Source: Glycera tridactyla (Eukaryota). From it: a stretch of DNA of 64,000 nucleotides. Position numbers and translations under genes: made by a program. The stretch covers positions 71,052,001 through 71,116,000 of the forward strand of contig OZ286459.1 in the NCBI GenBank assembly GCA_965644265.1. The letters run 5' to 3'. The notes beneath the pieces were generated by a model. That model was not told where the DNA came from. It ran no database searches and saw only the letters and a program-made list of their open reading frames with translations. Positions 5,358 through 60,405 of this stretch are shown here, piece after piece; the stretch's first letter is position 1; each line of letters opens with the position of its first letter.

Positions 5358-6067
5358 ACAAGTTTACAACAATTAGAGGTAAAACACAGCAATCAAAATA
5401 TATNNNNNNNNNNNNNNNNNNNNNNNNNNNNNNNNNNNNNNNNNNNNNNNNNNNNNNNNNNNNNNNNNNNNNNNNNNNNNNNNNNNNNNNNNNNNNNNNN
5501 NNNNNNNNNNNNNNNNNNNNNNNNNNNNNNNNNNNNNNNNNNNNNNAGCAATAGCAATGGGATTTCGTCCATATTCAGTGTGTAAAATCACCTTTGTTAC
5601 TCAATAGCTGAGATAGGGATATGCTTTTCAATAACTTCATTTATGCAGTGAATATCTCAACGTCATATACCCATCACAAATCAACTGCAACTTAAATATA
5701 AAAACCATAAATATGATAGTCAATGTGAACTGTATCCACTGGGAATGCTAGATACAGAAATACATGGTATGATTAGAAAAATAAGACTAGAATCAATACA
5801 TCCAATCATTGGGGTTTATTGAGGTGATCATATAAACTAAAGGCATTCATACTGATCTGGAGTACTAGTATGAGTAATGGCAGAGAGATGATAAAAATTT
5901 CAGGTAATTCTAAGGTGCTTCCATGTCCTTCCATGTCTCATGGACCACAAGTGTTATTTTTGCATATTATCTCAATACCTTGATTTTGTTAATGTTCAGA
6001 TATATGAAGTTGCAGCTGACCTGTGATAGGGTGATGAATCAAATATCAACAGAAGAAATTTATTTAC

Positions 6068-16800: not shown

Positions 16801-19800
16801 CAAAAACTAGGAACTTTCATAGTAAACTAAATAGTTATCAGATATAGCTGTTTTGTGTTTCCAATATCACAAATTTGCAGCTACATTCCCACAAGTATTT
16901 TAGTCATATTAGTAAGTCTCAGGCCATTATAAATGATCTTCTGACTAGATAATGCACAGTGAGTTGGCAAAAATGCAATGTGCCGAATATTGGGACACAA
17001 AGGAAATAGACAGACAACAGCCTGCATTATGCACAAACGAGACTATAGAAGAAAGATACGATGAGGACGATAATGATCATGACGACGATTAGGGGGACAA
17101 TACAGAAATGTGACCATTAATAGATTACTATATACATTTTGCTTCTTTTTGATCCAGAAGAATGTAGATTGATTTCGGCTCTAATGGGAACAAAATGGAA
17201 ACAGCAAACTGTCACAAAACAGAAACAGCAACCCATCCCACACTAAAACCATCCCTAACTTGCATCATAACAGGCCTACTCTTCAGGTAGTCTGTCTACT
17301 GAAGAGAAATGCTCACTGATACATTGAGCAGAAAATCATCTATGATATTCCTATGAATTTGAGTTTTCTTCTTGCTAATAGACAGAAGCACACTTCACAT
17401 CACACATCACTTTGCCAATTTTGATAGTTCTCACTAGCAATACTGTTAGTGATTGTGGAAGCACAATTCGGCATAATAACTAATCCGGCTAAAGAGATTG
17501 TACAATCTGACAGCTGTAGCCGACACCACACATGTCTGTGACACCTCTCTGACTCAATCAATCCTCACTTCAACCAGGTTTACACTAGAGCAAGAATATC
17601 CAAACATCTTCTTTTGTAGGCTTGATATCTGAGCATTACAGAGAATGTGGCATCACAAAACCATCAATTATGCTAGGATTCATCTGTGGTTGAATCTATG
17701 TAATAAATTCCATTTGAAAATCATAAGTCATCATCATCCCAAACCAAAAAGTTCAGAATGATCATTCATCTGATGGTATCATTAGCAATGAAATAATCCT
17801 TCAAAAGCTTGAGAATTCATGGCCGGGTGTCAAAGTCGTATTCCTGTTGCAGTCACATCTGCATGCATGAATATGCACTGAGTACAGATTTTGATTGACA
17901 ATGATCCAACTAGGCCTTGGCAGGAGCAATATGTTCTGTATTGCATTTCAATGAGGATAAATTATTCAACACACGCCTCAGAATTGACCTATCACATGTC
18001 TTCAATACCTATGAGAGTATGCATGTCAAAAGATGTGGGTCAGATCGAGAGATAAAGAGCAGCTCTCATTATCTATTCAGATGCTTATATACAAATCGAT
18101 CATAATCTGCAGTGGGTGTGTAAAGTAGAGTGCCCGGTACCCAGAGAAATACAGGAAAGACAGGAGGTGGCATCTCAAGGTGGGAATACACTCGTTTCCC
18201 TATCCGCTTAGACCATATCCCTACAAACTGCCATCTATTGTTGGTGATTGAAATGAAAGCATTTCCATCTGCTGGATGAAAAAGAAGTGAAGTCTTGATC
18301 AATTAGCATATAAAAAAGTTAGGTTAGTGGAAGTTTGTTTTGATCAATCAGCATGTAAAATGTTTGGTTAGTAATAGTTTGGCTTGGCCAATTAGCATGA
18401 AAATGTTTGGTTAGTGGAAGTTTGGATTGGCCATGCATCAGCTTGTGTTTGTATCGCCATTGCAGAGGAGATCAGCGATGCTGATAGGTCAAATTCAGAA
18501 TCAAGATGGCAGCCTCCAGGGTGAGCAATAATATGGTCAATATATAAACATATAACACGGATATGTTTAGAATTGGTCAAATTTGAAACCAAACAATTTA
18601 CCTGAAATTAGTCCTATGGCTGTGAAAAGGCAGAATGAATAATTATTTTTAGTAAGTTAAACTTAGATTTCATAGAAATCGAGTACAAACACCCACTCCA
18701 ATGATTTGACAATACAGGTAACATTTCACAAATTTATTTCTCTTTACTCATGATCTCATGAAAAAAATATATATGGCTATAAGCCGTCTTTTTGTAAGTT
18801 GACTTTTGAAAGCATGGTGTAACTTACCGGGATACTGGGCTACTCCATTGGCATATACTTCGGCAGCCTGGCCATTTGTCTGTGGCACAGGGAAGGTGGT
18901 GACTGGCGATAACATTGTTGGAGGTGCACCATTAATAGCTGTGGTCCCTGCTGGTAAAATACAAAAGAGATACACGCTTGAAATCCTGAGTCATCTTGCT
19001 GGAATCTTTGCCGATTCTCAATTCCACAGATAGCCTTGTGGACACAAGCAAAAATTTGTGGATGAGAACATTTTTCTATGATTATCCTGCACTTTGTCTC
19101 AGAATAGAACACACAGGTCCTTGTAGCCCAGATAGCTATTTCATGAGAAGACAAATTATTGATTCCCATTTCCCATCTAAAAATCACAAGCAGCTCAGAT
19201 TAGAACATAGCAACTGTCCGTGTGTGTGTTGTTTGTGTGTGTGTATGTGTGTGTGTGTGTGTGTGTGCATGTGTGTGTGCGTTTGTGTGTGTGGATGGAT
19301 GTGATGGCTGATGAAGAAGAGGTAGGTTCGGATGAGCAGTGGGTCACATGTGGAATGTGATGAGAAAATGATGGGCAAGCAAGCCGTGGCTCTGACAGCC
19401 TCCAATCACATCTTGAGACAGAATCACTAGAAAGCGTGAGCGACCTGCATCAAAGATCAGCTCCTATTCACACCCGTCTATTGTACAATTTACACTTGTG
19501 GCTTCCTGGGCAAACCACTGGCTAATCTGATCACTTCAATGCATTCACTGCGAGGCTGCCATTTGCTGCAGCCCTACCCCAACAAGATGAGAGAATGTCT
19601 GAGATGGCCTCAATGTCAGACATGTGGCCAATGCCAAGCACGCACTCAATTCAGTATGAGCAATTAGTCCAACTTTGAACTTTTAATTAGGTCTCAGGAA
19701 CAAATTATGTGTAACACAGAAGCAGCTTCAAAGGTGACAGCTGGATTCAGACATTTCCTGGCTGTACATGGTTTCACAAAACCATGCATGCCAACATGAA

Positions 19801-22800
19801 GCAGTTCCCAAAGCCTGTCATTCATCTGCTACATTCAATCAAGATCACAAGGAATATGTCATGAAATCATCAAATATGGTCAAGCATTGGCTTCATGATC
19901 ATCTTTAGATGATTTCAACTTCTTTACACTAACTCTTCTACATTTTCATTATTGATTATTCAGGATCTGATTACTTTCAACCATTCAACCATTTTGATAT
20001 GAGAGATCATGTCTGCTATGCTTTAACTAGTGTATATCCAAAGATAGCTAGGAAATGAGTGAGATTTTATCTCTTCCTGCTAGGGGGTTATCCTGCAGAA
20101 TTTGCTGTGTGATTTGTCTCTGAGATCTTGGCTTGAAAAGGTGGCAGGGCATATCAAGTCAACATGCAACACTTGCATGGCAGATTTCTTGCACTTCAAA
20201 ACTGTGCAGAATAGGGTGTAATTAGACGGGCGTGCCAATCAGGCTTCATATAAAATGAGACACATGTTCAAGGAAATATGAAGTCAAGCTGTTTTTATTG
20301 ATCAAATAACTCTTTTGTGACAGTAGTCAGAATGTGCAATATATATTTCTTCCTATCATTGAAAAAAACCCAGATTTGATCTAGAGATGATGAGAAGTAT
20401 TTTTGGTAATCGTTGTTATGATTCGTTGCTGAGCCCATGTGAGCTGTGAGCTCAATTGATTGATATATTAGTGACAAAAGAGTACTGAACAAGAATGTAG
20501 GGAATGATGCAAGGATCAGATTTCTTACCTGTAGTAGTGGGTGTAATGGCACCAGTTGAGATTCCATTGGGGATAAGGGCATTGGCATGTTGTACTTGTG
20601 CGGCAAGAGCGGCCATAGGGTTGATGTAGCTGCCTTGGGAGGCAGCAGCAGCCATGAGTGCAGCCTGTTGCTGCATCAATTGCTGAAAACGAGCAGAGAA
20701 AATATGCATATTCATGAGTGAATTCAACTCAGTTTATCAAGTGATACACATACTGAAGTACCATTTGGAGCTTCTGAAAAAATCGGAATCCTGGCACAGT
20801 TCAGAGAAATATCATCATCAGGAACACATAGGTACTGAATCATGTAGAATGAGTCAATCTTCTTTCTCTTGGGTGAACAATGCTCTAGACTTTATATATT
20901 TTGTTATTTGCTCATTTTATCACCAATTGCTGATTTGTTCTCATCGATATCGGGACCAAATGAGCAAGATAAATTCTATTGCCTTCTATCATGACCTTCA
21001 ACCATGCGAATCACCTTGCTCATCAGATCACAGGGCTCTACATTAACTTTTTTCTTCAGCTCTCCTTTGGGCAGGTGAAGTAGGATTTTTACCTGCCCTG
21101 CCTGTCATTTTCACCTGCCCTCCTGCATATAATCATAGCCCAAATGATGATTGGGTACCTGCCCGTTGGGCAGGCAAATTGATAAAATCACCTGCCCTAA
21201 CAGCACATCTGCCTGCCTGTGCCAGTAGGGTAACCATTAGTGTAGAGCCCTGTATCAGGGTTTCAGATGTGATGAATGTTCCAGAGGAGTTCTTCCCTCT
21301 CACACATGAGTGGAGGCAAATGTTGGAAGCAATGCAATCACAACTCATATCCTGCGGCTATGAAAAAAAAAACCTCAGCAACTTAATCATGTTCCTCATC
21401 ATACGTTCCTCATTACCAGCCAATTTTCCCTGCCTTTGATAATGCAAGATGCCACTGAAATCTCATTTTGCTGCCTTCCCGACAGCGAGATCAACTTTTG
21501 ACATGAGTGAACATGCTGTGCCATCAATTAAGGTGGCTCTGACAACTTTGGCCCCAGAGCTGCCAATCAATTTGACTAGCCTGTTTAAACTCCACTGGCA
21601 CCAATCAGTGAAAGGCCTGACATCCCTGACTTTTTGTCCCTTCCAGCATTTGCCGTAAATGTCAAAGATATTTTTCTCCCAGCTGAACAAGATGGGGTTC
21701 ATGGGACATACCAAGAGGAAGTCAAATGTCACAGCTGCTTACTCGGCACAATTTCCTTTTTTTATTTTTACCATTCATATCATTGTTACCATTGGAAAGC
21801 AGAGATACTCTCATACAGAATGAACATTTGATTAGAAGGTTTAAGTCAGCCTCAGTAAATCATCCAATCTCAAGCATTCCAGCTTTTTTGCATCGATAAG
21901 TTAAAGTGGACTAATCCCTGATGGAAGGAGGTAAAAAATGAATGTTCTGTGATCCAATTTCTGCGGCAATTAAACAGCTGACTAATCACCTGTGCATGAT
22001 GGGAAGGGGATTCAAGGTGCTTCACTATCCCGCCAAAGGCATGACTAGCAATAAATTGTCACAGCCATCACTAGCCATTCAACTGTCACATTGTAAGAAG
22101 TAGGATTTTCCATGATATGCTTGGATTTCATGCTACCTTTGCAGCAAATCGGAAAGGATGCCTTCATTGCTCCTGATTCAAACCCTGGACCTAACCTTGC
22201 ACTCAGCAACCCCGCAATAATCAGCCAGAGGCCAGTGCATGAAGAAAGAATTTGGACATTTGAGAAGGATGGAAGATGCAAATTGAAATATTCAGTGAAC
22301 CCTGCGACGAGTGACCCCCCAACAAGAGATCACCTCTGACCGGAGACCGCTTTTCAAGGGCACCTTTTTTATTTGACAAAGTCAAATATACCTTTGACGA
22401 GAGACCGCCTCTTTTGAGACTGAATTTTGTAGACATATAGGGTGGTCTCTCGTTGCTGGTTTCACTGTGAGCTGAAATCTCATTTGTGGATCAAAAGCGT
22501 TAATGTGCCGCAGCTGTGTGGGTGAGGTGGTTCATAAACTGGAAATATTTATCATTTCCACATTATCGCTATGAAGTAATCACCTGCTAAGCAGGCACTC
22601 TTTAAAACTGAGCATGCTAAGCCTCCAGATGCTATCTATTAAAAGTACACATTTTTATGTGAAATTAAATCTGTTGATCCAGACAAATACCGCCAACACT
22701 CGAAGGTCTCGCGAGCAATAAGTTAGAATTAAAGTCTAATGGGCACGCAGTGCAAATCTGTGTGGTGATTTGTCACTGTAGCCAGATCCACACTCTCATG

Positions 22801-26800: not shown

Positions 26801-29800
26801 GAACATTTCTGAAGTGCCATTTCAATCTATATAGGCCAATTGGTAAACTGTCAAGCACTGATTCTTGTGAATTACAGGGAGCTTGAGCTGCCACCAAGGA
26901 TTTGAAAATGGAAAGAAATCAGATTCTATATCTAGCACAACTACCTCGCAGACAGTCAGCAAAAGACTCTACTCACTACTGAGAACAGAAACCAGACGAA
27001 TTTATAACTGGTATGACTGAGTGGTGAATAGAAGTGAGACTCTGCTATGTGGAGTAAATACTAGTACGAAGATCATTCAAGCCATACAGAATCAACTGAT
27101 AACCACAATTGGTTATATGATTTGGTCATATGGTTAATAACCACAATGATGAGTGCTTTATGTAATAGACCCACCCCATTTATAATTTTCAGAAAAGCAT
27201 GTGGGTTCATGAAATACAGGTATTTCAACTGATCTCCTACTATTGTCATGAAAGATAATATTGAAATCCTGGAGCACAATAAAATCTGCTCGATGGCTGG
27301 GCAGCGGAGAGTGATATGACCGGAAAAAATGTTATCAGTTTGGCGATGGTTACCATGCAGACTAGGCCACATTTTCAACCACTTATCCAAGATAGCATCG
27401 CTAATTGAGATGCAGAGCACTAGCAAACAAGTTTCCATTGGCAAATGCATGATGGAATACGTCTCTATGAGAGTAAATGGGTCAATTGTTTCGTGTGCAA
27501 TATTTACTCTGCCGAGTACAGAGGGTAAATATTGCTGGCTTTGATGATGGTGTCGGATTCTAATGAGTATACATATAGGAAAGATTGATTGTATATGAGC
27601 GCAGCATAGTCTACGTACCTCATGATTTACATAGGCGCCAGCACTTGGCGACGTCTGAAGAGAGTTCGCCATCTGCTGTTGAATCAGCTGCTGCAAAAAT
27701 CAGAAAAACATGCTGCGTCTCAGAACTGATGTGAAATACTGTGTGCAGAGCCGAGACTCCAATAATAATTTCTGAACTATACGAGTCAACTGGTGGATCC
27801 TACTGTCACAGAATTTCGCCTCAGCTGCAAACATTTCAACTTTATATGAGAGATGCTGAAATATTCCAAGCACACAGGATAGTACTAACAGCTGCGAGAT
27901 ATAGTGCTCTCTCACAAATACACAAAACTCCTTCAATTATGGATATTCAAGATTTTTACAGCCTACATGCTGATATCTGAATGTGAGTGTACAAGCAGTG
28001 ATGTTCATCAATGTTCAGCAATGATTTTCAAGTCAAAATTAGCCTCAGTAGCCTGCATTTACCTGCAATTTGTGTGATTGTGACCTAAGATATTTTCTTC
28101 TGACGACTTCTGGTATAAGTGTTGAAAGTTGAATGACATTTTATGGATATAATTGAGACAAAGAGATGGGGAAAGCTGTTAGTGGGTATGCTGTCATCAT
28201 CTAACAAGATAATGGAAGCAATCAGAGAACAGGTGTGCCTTCTCTTTGAAGCAAGCCACTTGAAATGCCAACTCAAATTTGGCTCAGAGATTTCAAGAAA
28301 AAGAGCATCTGCATCAAGGTAAATGGGTGGTTTAACATTGACTGCTAGTAGGGCCAATCTCTTGCAGAATGGCTCGCATCCTGCGCCGCCATGGAATATA
28401 TACTTAATTGTGCAGTCTGATTAGATTATTCCTTCATTTACGATAATGGTGGAGGGATCAAGAAATGTTGATGGATGCAAGGCTAGAGTACAACTCTAAA
28501 CAAGATTCCAAGAAGTAACCTTTCGCTAGATTCAGAGGTACCCTTTAGTTTTTCGATACCAAGTGGAACAGAACCGTCATGTTTATGCCTACAAGACAAT
28601 TTATTGAATCCCCACACCAGAAATTAGGCCAATTATCTATATAATGCTGCACAGAAAAGTAGCACGAGTCCCAGAGCCTTTTCAGCAATCAAGAGCAAAT
28701 ATCCATCAGAAAAGCAGATATATCTGACAAAAACGTGACAGTGAGAAAAGCCAGCAACTGCAGTTAGGAAACTGTCATGGAAAATAAGGGCCACAATTGT
28801 AACTAATGCTCTCCCCATCAGGCCACACTCTGTGCTGATTTGGGCTTCCCATCTCCAGCCCATCGATATGGATGCACTGATGGAGCTTTCTGTGTTCAGT
28901 AATGTATATTTACTACTGTCATGAAATCAGTAGCTGTGAACCCAGTAGCCAAGATACCACATAAAATGACATATTACATCAGCAAATATAGTGTTCTTTG
29001 TCTTAAGATGGCATGTTTTTTCTTACTTGGCAATCAATGTCGAAATTGAACAGGTCATGCCAGTCATCCACCACATAATCAAGGCCACTGTAACGGCGGT
29101 CAAAATGCCATGCTTACTTCCAGCTTTTATTCCACAATAAGAAAAACTGGGTGCCTACATAAAAAACGTGTACTGCAGCACTGTGAAGTCCTTTCTTCAT
29201 TTCATCCTTCCTATATCAGATACCTTTGTTTCCACACTCTCTCCAGCCATCTTTTCGGATGATAGTGGTTCTTTTATGGGCATTGTTTGGGGGTGATGTG
29301 TGTATTTGTTTGTGAGCAATGATGAAAGGGTTGGGTAATTGGCTGCCTTCTCTGATAGCATCTCTTGTAGGAGTTCTTGTCATCAGTCATGCCGACTCAA
29401 GTTGTTATCGGTGCAAGGCAAGTTACAAGGCTTCTAAACGTCCAGATGGAGTGAGAATGGAATCAGCTTAATGTAGCGAATGATGTATTCACCGTGACTG
29501 CCACACCCTTTTCTGTAGGTATTAATGTTCTATAGTGCAGCTAACTCAATGTGACTCGTTTCTTTCTTGAAAAGCACAGTATATATCTGGCAAGTTTACA
29601 TGGTGATTTTATCTGTTGACAAGGGATTTCAAATCAAGGATTTCACTCCTCAACGTATGTGCTTTCCCTTCTCATCAATCATGAGAACAATATCCATGAA
29701 AACCCTGTGAACTGATGCAGTAACATAGAGCCGAACAATGTAGCCATACACACTTGTATACAGTAAAGAACAGGAAGCCAGAGTATGTACCTACATCATC

Positions 29801-35800: not shown

Positions 35801-38800
35801 GTGTTCCTTACTCTTCACTATACAGTAAAACCTGTCTATAGTGAAAAGTCACGGGCCCGATTTTTCTTTTCACTGTAGACAGGATTTCACTATATACAGG
35901 TCAATTACAGTGAAAAAAAAATGTTCGGGCCAGATTTTTCTTTTCACTGTAGGCAGGATTTCACTGTGGACAGGATTTCACTATAGCAGGGTTTACTGTA
36001 GTTTCTTGGCACATAAACTGACAGGAAGGCCCATAGATTCATTATTGTTTGATCCATCAGGGCACAGAGGTTGTTACCACTGATGATGACATACCAGAAA
36101 AGTACTCAAAATATAAAGCAATGTTAAATCACAAAAAAATGTCTCATGGTTGCATAGCCCTATTCTCTATGCTGCGGTAACTGTTTTGGCATGATCAGAT
36201 CGAAAAAGCAAAACGGAGTATATAAGCAGGATGGCATGAAAAGGTATAGTATTGAGGAGCAAATGGTCTGAATAGCAGCAAATATTCACCCACTATCCCA
36301 ATGCAAGCTGCAAAACTACTGGTGATTTTGTGAGTGAGTATGATAATTCTTTATTCGAGCAAATCCTTCACAGCTATTGAATCTTTCAAGTCTGAGATTT
36401 ATTTGCACCAATGACAATCCTCACACTCTGCTCATTCACATGACTCATCAAATACAATCCACACAACAGTTAACGCTCACAAAATTATGGACTGACAAGG
36501 ACGGCTACAGGACTACATGTATCTAACCCAACTAGGACTCCCTTGTTCTTAAACAAGATTTGTTGGCCAGCTCACAGCTCTGATGATTACTTGGATTGGC
36601 CAGAATAACTGTACGCTGATGGACATTCATTTTCGTCAATTCAAGTCTTATTCTACATGGACTACTGAGGTGTGAATAGCAAGTTTGAAGTTAACTACAA
36701 TCTAATACTATATTACTCATGCATTGTTCAGGTGAACAAATTAGCATCATGCAACCATGAAATCTCCAGTCAACAGCCATATTTCTTGTCATCCAGTCAA
36801 TCTTGTTTATTTTGTTCTGTTTGTGACTACATCGTCTCACTTTCAATGATGTCTCACCATCAACCCACGTGAATTAAAAATGTTCCCATGTGACTACAAT
36901 CTTCCCTCCGGTTCATCAATATTTCACTGGCTCCAGACATCAATCATGCTACAGGCTGATACATGTTTTTTCTCCATTTAAAAGCCAAACTACAGCTAAT
37001 GACATTCTAAACTAGTAGAATTCATGTCTAAGTCTATGAAACAGGGGCCCCCATGCAAGGAAGGAGGCAGTTGCTCTCTCCGAGAGGAAGCTCGGTCCAT
37101 TTTCGACTAACATACTGAATGTATGTCCATCGTTAAGGCAAGCCAATTATGTCAACATCACTTGTCCCCAATCAACCACAGCGTCCCTAAACCAATTGGC
37201 CTGAGGCATACATAGTGAATCTGCTCCAAGTTGCTAGACTACGGCTAGAGGATAAAACTACTACATACACTATATCAATATTCTTAGAAGATCCCATACA
37301 CTCAAAAATTCATCCCCTCTTCATTTTTTCAGACACAGTCACACTCAAGCGGCATTTCGGTGTTATGTTTTCTGAGAAAACCTTAGAAATTCACCTGACC
37401 TCCATCAAAACGGACCCAGAAGTGACCATGAATTTTGCTGAAATTCGGCATGAACTCCAAACATACATTATATGTGTCTGGTGAATACAGTGGTTAGAAC
37501 CGGACTAGCACAAAAAGCGGCACGTGATCTGCTGACTCGGCACTAAATGTGAATAATGTCACATACAAGCAGTCACAGGGTTGAGTTTTGAAATGCAACC
37601 TTCCTGCCCGATCCTCAAACCAATGACCATTTTTTTGCAGTGGCAATCATCAGCCGAGGGTGCACCTGTCACTGCTGACCTCAAACTCCTACCTTAGGAA
37701 GAAATGATTATGGAACTTGGCCCAAAAAGAGTAACAACCCCCATCATGTGATGCAAGGGTTGTGTCCAAAATCTCTCCACCAAAAAAAAAAAAGAATCCC
37801 CTAGTCCACTATATACCCATCACTGCACTATGATCAGAACCACATAATTTGGTTCGGTGTTCATTTTCATATTTGATTCATTGTGCTATGATAGAGTTGA
37901 ACTAGGTGAATCCGCATTCGAGGTTGCATTTTTCATGTGTTTTCTATGCAGTTAGCAGGGATGAATTCAGGGTATTTTGCAGGATTGCAAAGCAGTATTG
38001 GTACAGGATGACCAGCATTGGGGAGGATGGCAGTAGTCTATTTGTTGAATAGATCAGAATAAATGAGAGGATTGGGAAAGTGATAATATATATCAGATAT
38101 TAGGAGAGGTAGAACATATCTTGAATGATGCTCATCAGATATATTCAAAACCAGAGGTTAGATAAGAAGACATTAGGTAAAAAATATTCCCTTCTATAAC
38201 CTACATCTACATGAATGTCCTCCTATTCACGTTAATGGAAGTAGGTGGAATAAACAGGAAGATGTCAGTTTTAAATATTTCTGGTACCAGGAATAATGGT
38301 AGCTCTTGAATTGATATCTTTCTGCCATACATGGGGTGGAGTGAGAGTTGGAGAGAAAGACAGACAGAGATAGTGAGGATTAAGTAGTCTGATCTCTAAG
38401 GAGAATATAAAGGCATTTAAATTACCTGTGTGTAGGGGTCGGAGGCGCCAATCTGGAAGTAGGGGGCAGGTTTCAATAGCAAATCACCACGGCTCAATCA
38501 GCCCACAAAATACTCACAAATCAGTGTCAATCAATTTAGAATCATGCTTGGATATCCAAACACCATATCCCAGTTGGTGTACATCATCAATTAAAAAATG
38601 GCGAGATTTCATATATTTAAATTTCATATTTCTCTTAAAGCTAATATCCTTGCCTCAGTTAAGTTTTGAATACTGCTAATATACCCATAAACCAAATGAA
38701 GAGGTTTATAAAACCATCTCGCTGAATTGAATGAGCAGCTCAATGGAGGGCAATCTTTGGGATTGAAACATTCAAATATCATATTTTTTGTGATGTGTAT

Positions 38801-41800
38801 GATGCTAATGACAAGAAATTATACTGGCAAGTTGCAAGGACAAGATCTGCCCAGAGAATTATTATATGTTTCCCAGATGGTTCCTCACATTTAATCACAC
38901 GGGCATTTTGCCCGGAAAACAGTATCAGATAATAAATACAAAACACAACTTGCTTTTGCATGGAAGGCCATACACAGCAATTTCGGCATCCCTTTTTTGC
39001 AGAAATCTAATGCCAAAGATGTGCAAACAAAGTATTGCAAATCAATCACTGGAAAGTCCACAAAAATTACATTTGCTTCACCACTACAGATTAAACATGC
39101 TAAACTGTCATCAAATAAGCAAGATAATGTTGGTGAAATATACGTTTTCTACACCAGATTCTATAGCAAACTGAAAGAAATACAGGTAACATATATCATC
39201 CAGCATTTTGTAGACATTTTGTACAAAATTTGCCTCATTTGAGCACATCAGCTACTCATGTTCTCAATCCCAAGATAAAATGCAGAAATGGGATGAGGAA
39301 TAAACAACATGGTCAAATAACTGAATAGCCATAGGAAAATGACTGAAGGATGATGACAATGGTAATGACCATGCAGATGAAAATTTCGCATTTGAAATTT
39401 TGGTAAACACCAAGTTTGAAATGGCGATACAGTTGTGTCTAGGGGTTTGCCAGAGGACCAGAGCAAATGACTTATAGCCAAACACTGGTAGTAGTCCTTG
39501 ATTAAAGTGGCCTGACCTGAATGAAGATGGAGAACATAAACTGGGATATGGGTGAACTCAAAATTAGAGTTTGAGGCACCTATCTTCTTGAAATTTGGAT
39601 TTTCAACGGGGCAACAGGGTCAGAAAAATGGGCAATAGAATGAGAGAAAAAGAACAATGCCAATTTCTACATGGTCCAGGCGACATGAATGACAACAACA
39701 ATACATGATTAGGAAATGGTGCGCAGAAGGCGAAAATATACAAATATGCAATCCCTCCCCTGCTATGTTCAAAGGACATGCCACATTTCTACATATTGCC
39801 GTAGAGTAATTTCTCTTGAGTAGCAAGACTGTTTTGTTTTAATGTGTATTATCATTCCAAAAGATGCAGATGTTCTCAATGACTATGCATCCACTGTCAG
39901 CTCCTCCACTCTAGTTTAGTGCCATGAATATTTCAGCAAGATTCCATGCCTAGATGACAGTGTCAGCCCTATACTATGCCAATATACTGAAAAAAAATAT
40001 GCGATCGCAGATGAATACACATAAAATGTGATCATCTGATATTATTTCACAGATTGATCATTGTTTTTCATTTACAGTCTTCGATAGGCAATCTCCCATT
40101 GGGAAAGAGGATTAGAGATATCATTCTCCTGAGGAAATTTGGGCAAATGGGTGAGTTATCAGGAGAGCTGGCCATGATACTCTAATGATAAGGGGGGATG
40201 AACAAGGCAGAAGAGAGAAGGACTTCACAATCGTGTGAGACAGATTAACGAACTGAGTAGGAACATGTAACAAGTGATGCTTACCTGAGCATATGCATCA
40301 GAAGCTCCAACCTGCAAAGTAAAATGAAATAACATTTAGAATTACGAATCTGTTAATGCTTAGATAATAACTAATGCAGTCCATTCTGAATCCATTATTT
40401 GGTTACTTCCATAGCCAAAAATCTTGATTTATGAAGGGAAGTACACCACACAGAGCACGGCCTTTGGAATATTTTTGCACTCACGCTACATGAAGTTCAT
40501 GGTACTGATAAGTTTTTTCAGTGAAATCCTCAGGTACGATACTCAAATGATATTCAACACCAAGGTCATAAGATACACGCAAAATATTTAGTCAAACAAT
40601 ACCTCAAAATAGTGAAGCAGCTTGTGATACAAGGACAAACAAGTCTTTGTTGGAATCCATGTTGCCAACTTTGGAAATGTATCAGTTTGAAGTACAGTAA
40701 AGAAGAATAAGGAAGAAAATGTTCATTTACCTGTGGATAAGCACCATAAGCTCCAAACTGGGAGAGTGTGAAAGGATTTAATAATCCGAGAGGTCCCGCC
40801 ATTTGTTGCATTCTTCTGAGTTGTCGTTCTTTCTCTGTGTCAGCAAACTTTACCACCAAACTGGATGATGCTCCCTGCATTCAGAGGTGAAATGAAGGAT
40901 GGTTAGAAGGGATGCGGTACAGATGTCAAGCGGAGGCAGAGGAAATTTAGCATGTTCAAAAGCCAGATACAAGTGGAGACAGTCACCGAGTGATATCAGC
41001 TGAAGGCTAATCAGTCGCTCATGTAATCCACGTGGCTTACTTGTTCATTTCCAAGACAATGTGTGCACAGGCGAAACACTCCAGCCTTGCTGATGCAGCT
41101 ATTGCGAAGTCAGTCAACAGTGCAGTGTCCTGCCAGAGCAATATTATCACATTTGGAGGTAGGTCACTAACAGACGCGGGTGCTTATACAAAATACACCC
41201 AACACAGCTGCATGCATCAAGAGATAACATTAGCATGAGCCAGCAATGGGCAAGTTAACAAAGCTTATATAGTGGGTATCCCTCATATCAGTTAATTTAT
41301 GTACATACAAATGGTCTAGTGTGAGAGAAGCAAACCGGGTGTGAACTGTATAGCAGGGTGGCCGGCCCATGTGCTCGGGCTAAGGCTACTGATATCAATC
41401 GAACAGTTGTACAAACATGCCAGGGCTTTGAGGCGGCCTGACTCGGTTTGACAATAGTGCCTGCACGGCGACTGATTTGCCAGCCAGCGTGGCTGGTGAT
41501 GCCTGCTGTGCCCCCACTCCACCCCCCTCAGCTGATATCCCTCACCCACTCACACCCACCCACCCACGGGATGACTCACACCCATGGCCAACAAATACTC
41601 GCATGTCCATCCATGTAGATTAATGCTCTCGCATTCACATCAAGTTTCACTGGTATTGCAATTCCCCGCTAATACCCCCATTCATACAAACATGCCAATC
41701 GAGAGATCTAATAAGTTCATGCATGCCAGAGAAATAAACCTCCATCAACAAATTCAAATCACTGATATAACACTAACAAACTCACCCCGATACCCATGGT

Positions 41801-52000: not shown

Positions 52001-52948
52001 GAACATCCAGACATCAAACAATAAATGAGAGACACCAAAGCACATGACATACAAAATAATAAAGAAAATTTCCCATGTAAATAACATCTTCCCATACTTT
52101 TCATCTTCAGTGCAACCTGTTTGTCCCAATAGTCATTTTGCTTGTATACATTAAAGCAAAATGAGGAAAGAAAGACGTCCCCTAAAATAAAATTACTAGA
52201 ACTATGGATACTGCAGTACAACAGATGTGTCAAACTGAATGGGATACTACCCAAATAAAAGAACTAATGTGATTTCAAGCTTGAAAACAGACCTTAATTA
52301 CATGCACAAGCTGGTAGGATGGTATGTAAGCAAATTACATTCATAATGTTGGGCATGTATAGACAGGGGACAATTACCGACATATGACATTGCTGGCCTC
52401 AAGAATTACCTCATAGTAAAACAACATTTGTGCATCTCCTACTCAAATTTTGATGGCGAAATTGAATATTTCCACAAACAAATGTTGCCACCTTTTGCAT
52501 TTCAGGTTTTTAAACGAGCATTACTGCCAAAGTTTCTCTAGAGATGATCCATGACAATGAAAATTCCAGAAAGGATGCTTTCAATTCCCAGAAGTTGAAT
52601 GATATGGTAAATTCAGCTGACAAAATTAAGGGTAAATCAATCACCGGCTGCATATAATGATTGAGGTTTCAGGCCAATGTTGGACAATATCGAAGAAATA
52701 AATATAACAAGCTCATGTAAATAAATGGAAAGCATTTACAGCCCCCACCCCCCACCCGTGAACCCCATATATACACTCACCAAAAACCTTAGCCTGGAAC
52801 CTCAATGCCAAACAACACTGAAGATGAAATAGATGAGAATGATGTCTACTCACATGTTGAGAACTTACCGGCATTGTCTGACTGCCATGTAAAGCATTGA
52901 TAGCGGCTTGAGCTTCTGAGTGCGAACCAAATTTGACGAATGCACAAC
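6068..52948 (-). CDS. CELF3-6: CELF3-6 / Bruno-3-type RNA-binding protein gene, partial (end of RRM2 through the divergent linker); extends beyond both window edges
   Basis: Six GT-AG exons splice in frame to (G)[26 protein letters not shown]|[48 protein letters not shown]|[29 protein letters not shown]...|...[17 protein letters not shown]|[22 protein letters not shown]|[30 protein letters not shown]. This matches the CELF4/bru-3 sequence and exon layout as I recall them. Confidence 0.97.
7046..7197. repeat. Minisatellite, 4 x 38 bp
   Basis: Unit gagaaatatgaa[c/t]gtttatatcataagctctc[a/g]gagat at 7046, 7084, 7122 and 7160. Confidence 0.97.
7747..8050. repeat. Compound trinucleotide low-complexity tract (GAT)n/(AGT)n/(GGT)n
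   Basis: Visible directly; accounts for the poly-T/V/S ORFs in the track. Confidence 0.95.
10663..10728 (-). CDS. CELF3-6: CELF exon, 66 nt, [22 protein letters not shown] (alternative donors possible at 10657 and 10630)
   Basis: Acceptor ctctgcctcttgcag, donor CCG|gtatag, phase 1-1; matches CELF4 AQ....DPLQQAYAGVQQYA. Confidence 0.93.
13237..13324. repeat. Minisatellite, ~4.5 x 19 bp (cacagtggttcactacaat)
   Basis: Visible directly with 1-2 substitutions per unit. Confidence 0.9.
18301..18432. repeat. Three diverged ~44-bp tandem units, each containing ACTAAC on the minus strand
   Basis: Units start at 18301, 18346 and 18390; gttagt at 18323, 18367 and 18410. Confidence 0.85.
18602..18619 (-). 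CDS. CELF3-6: Candidate 18-nt microexon ((A)IGLIS)
   Basis: cttactaaa branch-like motif, ttcattctgccttttcacag acceptor, CAG|gtaaat donor; phase 1-1 matches both flanking exons. Confidence 0.6.
18828..18950 (-). CDS. CELF3-6: CELF exon, 123 or 120 nt (NAGNAG), [A][40 protein letters not shown]
   Basis: Acceptor tgtattttaccagcag, donor CCG|gtaagt, phase 1-1; NGQ..AE.YANG...YP motif as in CELF4. Confidence 0.93.
19220..19292. repeat. Imperfect (GT)n microsatellite
   Basis: Visible directly. Confidence 0.95.
20529..20682 (-). CDS. CELF3-6: CELF exon, 154 nt, [51 protein letters not shown](G/A)
   Basis: Acceptor ttctctgctcgttttcag, donor CAG|gtaaga, phase 0 to 1; matches the [14 protein letters not shown]...GxYxNPMAA motif. 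Confidence 0.95.
21031..21252. mobile_element. TIR-bounded non-autonomous DNA element (222 bp)
   Basis: Termini cagggctctacattaa / ttagtgtagagccctg; repeated internal acctgccc motifs; no clean TSD. Confidence 0.7.
22293..22467. mobile_element. MITE family A (CAGTG termini; Tc1/mariner-pogo-like), 175 bp
   Basis: Imperfect TIRs cagtgaaccctgcgacgag / ctcgttgctggtttcactg; homologous to the outer element at 34079. Confidence 0.75.
23753..23835. repeat. (GA)n microsatellite
   Basis: Visible directly. Confidence 0.97.
25431..25522. repeat. (AGA)n/(GGA)n purine tract
   Basis: Visible directly; accounts for the poly-R/L/S ORFs. Confidence 0.95.
27619..27690 (-). CDS. CELF3-6: Candidate 72-nt cassette exon ([24 protein letters not shown])
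   Basis: Acceptor tttttctgatttttgcag (tandem CAGCAG), donor GAG|gtacgt, phase 0-0; peptide resembles the start of the next exon. Confidence 0.78.
34079..34316. mobile_element. MITE family A copy (internally deleted) carrying a nested family B MITE
   Basis: TA|cagtgaaac ... ggtctctcgtcgcaggttacactg|TA; shares gtcaaata..tacct and the right end with the 22293 copy. Confidence 0.8.
34109..34252. mobile_element. MITE family B copy nested in family A, flanked by TA on both sides
   Basis: ta|cagtaaaacctgctatagtg ... gacaggtttaatg|ta; aligns to the reverse complement of 35823-35998 with one internal deletion. Confidence 0.85.
35823..35998. mobile_element. MITE family B, apparently full length (176 bp), TA-flanked
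   Basis: TA|cagtaaaacctg ... cagggtttactg|TA with internal caggatttcact repeats. Confidence 0.88.
38426..38452 (-). CDS. CELF3-6: Candidate 27-nt microexon 2 (IGASDPYTQ)
   Basis: Acceptor cctgccccctacttccag, donor CAG|gtaatt, phase 0-0; 6/9 aa identical to microexon 1 with five synonymous third-position changes. Confidence 0.8.
40285..40311 (-). CDS. CELF3-6: Candidate 27-nt microexon 1 (VGASDAYAQ)
   Basis: Acceptor atttcattttactttgcag, donor CAG|gtaagc, phase 0-0, no stop; 21/27 nt identical to the last 27 nt of the 144-nt exon. Confidence 0.8.
40731..40874 (-). CDS. CELF3-6: CELF exon, 144 nt, [48 protein letters not shown]
   Basis: Acceptor tctgaatgcag, donor CAG|gtaaat, phase 0-0; diagnostic [13 protein letters not shown] motif. 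Confidence 0.98.
43380..43620. mobile_element. Possible SINE/LINE 3' remnant
   Basis: GC-richer island ending in an atg/aatg-like tail on the minus strand; family not identified. Confidence 0.25.
45540..45862. repeat. Three degenerate tandem units (~115-145 bp), probably internal repeats of a transposon remnant
   Basis: Repeated acac[c/a]aagtttg...tcatgaagt...tgtcc[a/g]g[a/g]aac blocks and tgaccttgaaatt motifs. Confidence 0.65.
46019..46094. repeat. Perfect (CA)38 microsatellite, reading (UG)38 in the CELF pre-mRNA
   Basis: Visible directly. Confidence 0.97.
46480..46762. mobile_element. Helentron/DINE-1-like non-autonomous element, 3' portion
   Basis: (GACA/GACG)n at 46659-46710 followed by a terminal hairpin tatgtctccccc...ggggagacata (46723-46760); left boundary approximate. 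Confidence 0.5.
52869..52948 (-). CDS. CELF3-6: CELF exon, 80 nt, RRM2 RNP1 region (G)[26 protein letters not shown]
   Basis: Acceptor tttttgtctggttgcag, donor CCG|gtaagt, phase 1 to 0; near-identical to CELF4 RRM2. Confidence 0.98.
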
Positions 52949-58278: not shown

Positions 58279-60405
58279 TTGAAGTTGAAGTTGAAGTTGA
58301 AAAACGTTTATTTTCTTTCACGGAAAAATAACATTCATATACATAAAATAAACAGTACATGATTTTCGATGTATCCGTGAATGAGTCACCATGTAAATTC
58401 TATAGATAGTGAATCACTCAAGGTAAAATACAGTCATGGAGCCAGACTTGACACTTTCACTCATAAATTGTGTTCGTTATGGATATTGGTTGTCAGAGCC
58501 GACCATAAAAAGCGTGACCGCTGTAGAATTGCTGCTATTTTTCGTTAAGTTGAGACATGTGTCTTGTTTAAAAACATATTCTGGTTGTGTGTCAACTCTG
58601 CCACCATAGTGTAACATCTGCGATAAATAATGCACATTTAACTTCCCAATAAACTTTTCTCAACGTATTTCCCGGGATCATCTTGTGGTAATCCATGTTC
58701 TGACATGTTCTGTGAAAGCATTTCTTGATAGATTCTTGAGCTTTTTCAGTTCAGTGGGTAGTTTGTTCCATACAAGTGGACCAACATAGGAGAATGCTTG
58801 TTGCCCATGTACTGATTTCATTAGAGGTAATTCATAGTTCCCCTCCAATGCCCCTCTTGTCCCATGATCATGGTAGTCTGAGAGTGGTTTCAGAACTTCC
58901 TTAATGTACACAGGTACTTCATCTTTTGAACATTTTTGCATCATTAAGATGAGGTGTAGTTCTCCTGCCTCTGACAATCTCAATATACCTGTACTACTAT
59001 GCAGAAAATCTGTATCAGTCCATCTGTTTCTCAACAAAATGGTTCTCAGGGCTTTGTTCTGCAAAACCTGTAACTGATATGCGTCCTTGACTGACAATGA
59101 GTGAAAAACTGTGTCACAATAATATAACAGAGGCAACACAAGGGCACAATATAAATTCTGAGCTGCTTTTGATGTGATAAACTCTCGTGCTCTCGCTAGC
59201 ATATAGATTCTTACGCTAGCCTTCTTGCAGACATATTCCACATGTTTATCAAAGGACATATACGGGTCTAGGATGACTCCTAGATACTTAAACTGTTCGA
59301 CAACCTCCACAATCTCGTTGTTTATCCTGATATCTGGAAAAACTCGATTTGATAGCATAGCTCGGGTCCCAAAAATCATGATTTTTGTCTTCTTAACATT
59401 CAGGTATAGTTTATTTGTGTTCAGCCATCTCTCTACTTGGAGTAAGTCATCCTGGAGGTCATCCACGATCCGTACATGATCAGTCCCACTATGATGTATT
59501 GCTGTGTCGTCCGCATAGAGCGTGCATTTACATCTTGTGAGTGCATTGCTGATATCATTAATATAAATGATGAATAGTAGAGGGCCTAATGTCGAGCCCT
59601 GGGGGACACCACAGGTGACTTCTTTGGGTTCAGAGATATGTCCATTTATCATGGTCGTTTGTTTTCGCCCCACTAGAAAGCTTTCGAACCACCGTATTGA
59701 ATCTTCGGAAACTCCATATCTGATCAGTTTGGAAAGCAGTCTAGAGTGGTTGACCGTTTCAAAAGCCTTTTTAAAGTCTAAAAACGCAACCACTGTTAGT
59801 TTCTCATTTTCAGAATTATTTATTATGCTGTTTGTTACTTGTAGGAGGGCAGTTTCAGTTGAATATCCCGATCGAAATCCCGATTGACAAGAATTGAGAA
59901 GATCATTTTTATTGAAATACTTGTAGAGTTGTGTATGCACTGATTTCTCAATCATTTTTGAAACCCAGGGCAGAATAGAGATCGGGCGGTAGTTTGATGG
60001 GTCTGAACGGTCTCCATCTTTATATATTGGAGTCACCTGTGATGTCTTCCACCTGACTGGGAAAGTGTGACTTTCAAAGGACTTTCTAACAATAATATCT
60101 AACACTGGAGCTATAATATCAGCTGCGTCTTTCAAAAAACGGGCATATATCCCCGGAAAACCTGTGGACTTTGCAATTGGCAGCTTTTTCAGAAAATCAC
60201 AGATCTCAGATTGTGTTGGGGGTTCTACGTCAAACGGTTCAATTGGCTTTGGAATTTCAGGCTCTTGTGGTAGTAGTGGGCCAGTGATCTGGCTGCTTAA
60301 CGAGTCTCCCACCTTAACTGAGAAAGAGTTGAAAGTATTAGCCATTTCTGAGCTTTCAGTAGAGTTTCTATCATTGGTCTGCACAATAACATCATTTTGT
60401 ATCCT
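58279..60405 (-). mobile_element. 5'-truncated non-LTR retrotransposon (CR1/L2 group) with 3' UTR, AATAAA and a (TTCAAC)n tail
   Basis: RT ORF followed by a ~365-nt UTR, AATAAA at 58312-58307 and ~3.5 copies of ttgaag on + at 58279-58300. No endonuclease domain seen; the 5' boundary is approximate (in-frame stop just upstream). Confidence 0.92.
58678..60384 (-). CDS. LINE ORF2 remnant: reverse transcriptase and C-terminal region, 568 aa uninterrupted
   Basis: Motifs PIYKDGDRSDPSNYRPISIL, QSGFRSGYSTETAL, FLDFKKAFETVNH, GVPQGSTLGPLLFIIYIND, LYADDT, LNVKKTK, YLGVILD. Confidence 0.95.
   Translation of the reverse strand: MQTNDRNSTESSEMANTFNSFSVKVGDSLSSQITGPLLPQEPEIPKPIEPFDVEPPTQSEICDFLKKLPIAKSTGFPGIYARFLKDAADIIAPVLDIIVRKSFESHTFPVRWKTSQVTPIYKDGDRSDPSNYRPISILPWVSKMIEKSVHTQLYKYFNKNDLLNSCQSGFRSGYSTETALLQVTNSIINNSENEKLTVVAFLDFKKAFETVNHSRLLSKLIRYGVSEDSIRWFESFLVGRKQTTMINGHISEPKEVTCGVPQGSTLGPLLFIIYINDISNALTRCKCTLYADDTAIHHSGTDHVRIVDDLQDDLLQVERWLNTNKLYLNVKKTKIMIFGTRAMLSNRVFPDIRINNEIVEVVEQFKYLGVILDPYMSFDKHVEYVCKKASVRIYMLARAREFITSKAAQNLYCALVLPLLYYCDTVFHSLSVKDAYQLQVLQNKALRTILLRNRWTDTDFLHSSTGILRLSEAGELHLILMMQKCSKDEVPVYIKEVLKPLSDYHDHGTRGALEGNYELPLMKSVHGQQAFSYVGPLVWNKLPTELKKLKNLSRNAFTEHVRTWITTR

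Follow-up and report, generated by a model that had tools for sequence, protein, structure and literature searches.

How do two 27-nt coding segments, each resembling the end of the exon upstream of them, come to lie in the intron of an RNA-binding protein gene, and are they used as exons? This question is raised by a 64,000-nt stretch of contig OZ286459.1 (the window in what follows), which holds, on its minus strand, the greater part of a CELF3-6/Bruno-3-class gene that belongs to a spiralian invertebrate. Here, a 144-nt exon (40731..40874, minus strand), which covers the last strand of RRM2 and the start of the divergent domain, ends in FGAYGAYPQ. In the intron downstream of it lie microexon 1 (VGASDAYAQ, 40285..40311, minus strand) and microexon 2 (IGASDPYTQ, 38426..38452, minus strand). 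A preliminary description of this DNA, made from its letters, had taken the two as copies of the exon tail and had proposed that they form a regulated cassette or a mutually exclusive pair. We found both microexons, one after the other, in assembled mRNA. Our preferred reading, which we regard as quite likely, is that two successive local duplications gave rise to two microexons that are spliced in tandem into the mRNA, followed by a 72-nt exon.

Copies of an exon tail in assembled mRNA

The parent unit is the 27-nt end of the 144-nt exon (40731-40757, minus strand) and is preceded, within the exon, by ctctcccag. Microexon 1 lies between the acceptor ttttactttgcag and the donor cag/gtaagc. All three units have cag before and gtaa after them, and the two microexons have a pyrimidine-rich stretch ahead and are in phase 0-0. 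Each microexon 27-mer had one exact match in the window, with 0 expected by chance. Over the 27 nt, the tail differs from microexon 1 at 6 positions and from microexon 2 at 11, while the microexons differ from each other at 10. Five of these 10 differences are synonymous third positions (in the codons for G, A, S, D and Y), and two more are third positions in changed codons. At the place of the parent's Tyr-Gly, both microexons have Ser-Asp. The intron between them measures 1832 nt. What the preliminary description had stated about the sequence therefore held throughout, on the minus strand: the exact 27-mers with cag and gtaa in phase 0-0 after an exon ending FGAYGAYPQ, the 10 of 27 differing nucleotides with five synonymous third positions, the shared Ser-Asp, and the 1832-nt spacing, from which it had concluded that steric exclusion is not forced.

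The likeness was also recovered by an unprompted repeat search, in which the three 34-nt copies (cag, 27 nt and gtaa) formed the top direct-repeat family, D1, with spacings of 446 and 1859 nt. Over these 34 nt, the parent tail is 82% identical to microexon 1, and microexon 2 is 71% identical to it. The 20-kb intron offers only 68 AG-27nt-GT candidates, and none of 300 dinucleotide-preserving shuffles of it gave such a unit that shares at least 5 of 9 residues with the parent peptide. Neither strand of the window has a further copy of the unit, and no similarity is left among the flanks of the three units beyond cag and gtaa. With the D1 family and the shuffles both agreeing with the earlier claim that the microexons copy the upstream exon's tail, we take them to be paralogues of this tail that were born by local duplication.

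RNA data were available from two RNA-type runs (X1 and X2) of one organism (A) in the form of assembled contigs, not reads. The 144-nt exon occurs in both runs (word shares of 1.00 and 0.61), and the contigs were compared with the region 38000-41200 of the window. A 175-nt contig from X1 passes from 40729-40865 to 40285-40309 (joint 40731>40311, GT..AG on the gene strand) and then continues for 13 letters, which match the opening 13 nt of microexon 2 exactly. The second microexon is fully covered by a 306-nt contig from X2, which leads from 40285-40312 to 38426-38452 over 1832 nt, again with GT..AG ends, and then runs on for 251 nt. The first 30 of these correspond, as reverse complement, to the beginning of a 72-nt in-frame exon (QLIQQQ...AGAYVNHE; 27619..27690, minus strand), placing it directly after microexon 2 in RNA. 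All contig pieces are at least 99% alike to the window. In the mRNA assembled from the two samples, the 144-nt exon is thus followed by microexon 1, then by microexon 2 and then by the 72-nt exon, and both 27-mers are genuine spliced coding exons. As the spliced contigs join microexon 1 directly to microexon 2, the two occur in one transcript. The check proposed in the preliminary description, a search of RNA for the 27-mers joined to their neighbours, hence returned spliced contigs from X1 as well as X2. In X2, the word depth was 4.0 for the microexon contig and 2.4 for the constitutive-exon contig, which is consistent with majority inclusion. Contigs that skip the microexons were seen in neither run, where coverage is thin and minor variants are dropped from contigs.

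Constraint, distribution and origin of the microexons

Between the two microexons, third codon positions differ in 7 of 9 cases and the other positions in 3 of 18 (one-sided Fisher p = 0.0036). Between the tail and microexon 1, third positions account for 2 of the 6 differences and show no excess, a pattern that fits an early change of amino acids, then constraint. In two related organisms (B and C), 40280-40322 and 38382-38488 are matched by genomic-looking contigs with 2-4 differences, and no difference is listed within either microexon, even at synonymous sites. Around microexon 2, the conserved island (38382..38488, minus strand) extends into the intron by about 44 nt downstream and 36 nt upstream. 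The 144-nt exon has eight listed differences across the two organisms (five in B, seven in C), all of them synonymous by frame reading; the 179 nt upstream of this exon are about 13% different, and over the rest of the intron the contigs of B and C do not align at 80% likeness. Codon-periodic divergence and conservation in relatives argue for purifying selection on the microexons, in line with the selection on the peptide that had been suspected from the sequence of the pair. The make-up of microexon 2 is also unusual: six codons in a row end in C, GC reaches 63%, and CpG occurs twice, against 40% GC and a CpG observed/expected ratio of 0.37 for the window. This composition, together with the lack of change in B and C, suggests a constraint at the nucleotide level, e.g. 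a splicing enhancer or a protein-binding site.

For the distribution across animals, 427 CELF3-6-class proteins or fragments were fetched by a profile-free HMMER search with the 48-residue product of the 144-nt exon and by word-index searches. None of the 427 contains GASD or at least two GAY-type units, and the gene's own product did not turn up in the protein database searched. Literature searches gave no description of such CELF microexons either; for the proteins fetched and the literature searched, such a pair is thus not known from CELF genes, as the preliminary description had remarked. In distant relatives, the units were found neither in three genomic loci (L001-L003, 10 kb downstream) nor in two transcripts (L004 and L005). 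These relatives differ from the 144-nt exon at 28-39 of 48 third positions, i.e., synonymous sites are saturated, and their lack of units therefore shows lineage restriction only. As far as seen, the duplication appears to be restricted to the lineage of organisms A-C. The scan of orthologous introns that had been proposed gave a divided answer: both exons are kept in B and C, but none is present within 10 kb in L001-L003. Homology-based gene models would miss the 18 residues that the microexons encode, because no fetched relative has them.

Other animals have FGAYGAYxQ-(Q)LMQQQ without these 18 residues. Across animals, the insert between ...YxQ and (QL)MQQQAA varies from 0 to 40 residues. 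Instead of separate microexons, L001-L003 and also transcript L005 have a 24-nt extension of the same exon (VPQSVSSQ), in the loci via a downstream donor (10358-10381 in L001, 10271-10294 in L002 and about 569-592 in L005). Other inserts at this junction are VSTQ in Octopus, VDLNF in spiders and 1-3 residues in vertebrates. The ...YxQ/(QL)MQQQAA junction of CELF3-6 genes thus appears to be a recurrent site of small lineage-specific inserts. An insert in L004, VGVSPGM, was considered as a relative of microexon 1 and rejected, as 3 of 7 residues in common are too weak to claim.

How could such copies have become exons? In the scenario of two successive duplications, about 34 nt would have been copied into the downstream intron, comprising the 27-nt exon tail, the donor gtaa and the pyrimidine-rich in-exon sequence ending in cag. 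This piece carries its own donor, and ctctcccag in the parent exon forms a ready-made acceptor-like signal. The copy would have been usable as an exon at once, because the AG in front and the GT behind came along; we infer that a copy of about 34 nt or more that lands in this intron could be spliced immediately. The first copy would then have gained the changes Tyr to Ser and Gly to Asp and would have been copied again to yield the second microexon. This order, from the tail to the first copy and from there to the second, is the simplest history because both microexons share Ser-Asp. Both copies are now spliced one after the other, followed by the 72-nt exon. If correct, the locus provides an RNA-supported case in which an exon piece with an internal AG and its own donor becomes a working microexon once it is copied into an intron.

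Several points weigh against this reading. No flank similarity extends beyond cag and gtaa, so that how much was copied, and in which order, is judged from 27-34 nt. The RNA support consists of assembled contigs of two small runs rather than reads, and since minor isoforms are dropped from contigs, constitutive and alternative use are not distinguishable. The third-position changes in microexon 2 all go to C, which suggests directional pressure, and the divergence can therefore neither date the event nor serve as a clock.

The host gene and its other exons

The 48-residue product of the 144-nt exon matches 281 proteins at E<=1e-10 in the HMMER search. The best full-length relatives of the gene are two transcript assemblies (P0001 and P0152), and its best named relatives, obtained by word-index searches, are CELF3/CELF4 of Octopus, Capitella, Tubulanus, Lineus and other molluscs. 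The exon of the type RRMQQ...FGAYGAYxQ follows directly after the RRM2 segment GCAFVKF...HGSQTMP, as is typical of the CELF3-6 subfamily. By tblastn of CELF3-6 proteins, the exons were mapped on the minus strand in the order RRM2 end (about 52.9 kb), 144-nt exon, 20529-20682, and then about 18.9, 10.7 and 6.1 kb; on the protein matches, the named relatives and this order of exons, we assign the gene to the CELF3-6/Bruno-3 class. The last mapped exon ends in ...TTAQKEG at about 6.07 kb. An exon for the C-terminal RRM3 (NLFIYHLPQEF...KRLKVQLKRPK) was not found in the window, in which a run of N (5404-5546) lies just beyond the last mapped exon. The window contains six such runs of 137-173 nt, and the one at 5404-5546 occupies the expected place of the first RRM3 exon, just downstream of the ...TTAQKEG exon.

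The exon encoding the RRM2 end (GCAFVKF...HGSQTMP; 52869..52948, minus strand), identified by tblastn of CELF3-6 proteins and by its sequence, has two donors 15 nt apart. The proximal one (ccg/gtaagt) is at 52869/52868. The distal one (cat/gtgagt) adds a 15-nt extension (VSSQH; 52854..52868, minus strand) and is the one used in the X2 contig, which reads into the 144-nt exon with VSSQH between ...QTMP and GASSS... Small inserts at this point were also present in fetched fragments of other species, e.g. VSIV and VR. Downstream of the microexons, the next conserved exon (QLMQQQAAL...; 20529..20682, minus strand) is the direct follower of the 144-nt exon in most other species. Its first part (QLMQQQ...) seems to have a diverged copy in the 72-nt exon at 27619-27690. 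An 18-nt candidate microexon (18602-18619, minus strand) contains TAG in one frame. In an upstream intron of the gene, an open frame of 575 codons (58681-60405, minus strand) is reverse-transcriptase-like, as in a LINE-type element.

Regulation, product and comparison with known systems

The microexons might alternatively be independently regulated cassettes, e.g. neuron-type specific and dependent on SRRM3/4 (eMIC), in which case they and the 72-nt exon could be combined into as many as eight linker variants, all in frame. We consider this possible, though not probable. Bilaterian neural microexons of 3-27 nt depend on SRRM3/4 with an eMIC domain (PMC8797185, PMC12626424), and with 27 nt each and phase 0-0 both microexons lie within the size range of frame-preserving exons of the SRRM3/4 type. 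All eight inclusion and skipping combinations of microexon 1, microexon 2 and the 72-nt exon stay open and in frame. The conserved intron flanks of microexon 2, the lack of listed changes in both exons even at synonymous sites, and the fact that other animals have small inserts of varying length (0-40 residues) at this junction also speak for regulation. UGC occurs upstream of the acceptors, at -5 for microexon 1 and at -16 and -29 for microexon 2; however, UGC within 30 nt is expected by chance at a good fraction of acceptors, and it does not discriminate here because the constitutive 144-nt exon has UGCAG as well, with UGC at -5. The splicing-factor motif scan returned no Rbfox site (UGCAUG) within 150 nt, and other motifs occurred at unremarkable density. 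The lack of a skipping contig in either RNA run also argues against cassettes, although these are weak data in which contigs hide minor forms.

A mutually exclusive pair, of which each mRNA would contain one or the other, has the usual anatomy of tandem-duplicated substitution exons on its side, as the microexons are homologous, adjacent and of equal length and phase. We nevertheless hold it to be highly improbable. The contigs from the two RNA samples join microexon 1 directly to microexon 2, which refutes this part of the earlier proposal for the assembled isoform; double inclusion and double skipping are both in frame and thus leave no frame-based enforcement, and the 1832-nt intron excludes steric hindrance. 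The suggested check for docking/selector complementarity found nothing notable in the region, where inverted repeats are short, imperfect (73-92% matched) and unremarkable. That the microexons are chance matches or dead duplicates outside the mature mRNA, as their very small size and their absence from the open reading frame listing might suggest, has a negligible probability given that contigs from two samples are spliced exactly at GT-AG joints, that 0 of 300 shuffles reproduced a unit, that the divergence is codon-periodic and that two related organisms conserve both exons. Altogether, the locus represents an ordinary lineage-specific exon duplication, not an either-or splicing switch.

As a result of the tandem inclusion, the product gains 18 residues, and its divergent domain opens with three copies of the conserved GAYGAYxQ-type motif. 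The added residues bring two more Tyr, two acidic Ser-Asp pairs and more Ala/Gln, and they would lengthen the Tyr/Gln/Ala-rich low-complexity start of this domain. In this way, the copies make a conserved low-complexity motif longer, within a protein that regulates splicing. In vertebrate CELF2, clustering as well as splicing activity depend on the divergent domain, for which Tyr-rich regions of FUS/TAF15 can substitute (PMC13522573), and the domain is also essential for the action of ETR-3 on CFTR (PMC2978352). A review describes the CELF linker as a phosphorylation hub and reports that residues 192-231 of CELF3 target nuclear bodies (PMC13326565). By analogy, the extra motif copies may tune self-association, partner binding or phosphorylation. 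As vertebrate paralogues need the divergent domain for activity and clustering, a lineage that has tripled the most conserved motif of this domain offers a natural variant with which the role of the motif can be tested. Going further, microexon 1, microexon 2 and the 72-nt exon, as diverged copies of neighbouring exon ends or starts, could act as a combinatorial dial for 1-4 Tyr-containing GAY-type motifs, by which cell-type-specific splicing tunes clustering or partner binding. We regard this as unlikely; if true, it would represent a natural 'sticker-valency' switch inside a splicing regulator, made by duplicating exon ends.

Among known systems, the closest in anatomy are tandem-duplicated mutually exclusive exons, which have been surveyed in PMC9741552 and of which the unc-32 exon sets are controlled by a CELF protein, UNC-75 (PMC3585155). 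Common to both are neighbouring homologous exons of identical length and phase, local duplication, and a divergence that falls mainly on synonymous sites. In contrast to these, the copies described here add to each other and to the parent, so that the motif is present three times and nothing is substituted, and the unit copied is the tail of an exon rather than a whole exon. With the neural microexon programme, the two microexons share the length of 27 nt, the preserved frame, a location within a disordered part of a neuronal RNA-binding protein, UGC near the acceptor (which the constitutive 144-nt exon has as well), and, for microexon 2, conserved flanks. Microexons of that programme are deeply conserved, whereas those described here are lineage-specific duplicates, known from sequence and two unlabelled RNA runs. 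The inserts of other CELF3-6 genes occupy the same position, between ...GAYGAYxQ and (QL)MQQQAAL, but are unrelated in sequence, and none of them repeats the GAY motif. Within this range, we file the pair as lineage-specific duplicated coding microexons; duplicated exons and microexons are both already known kinds.

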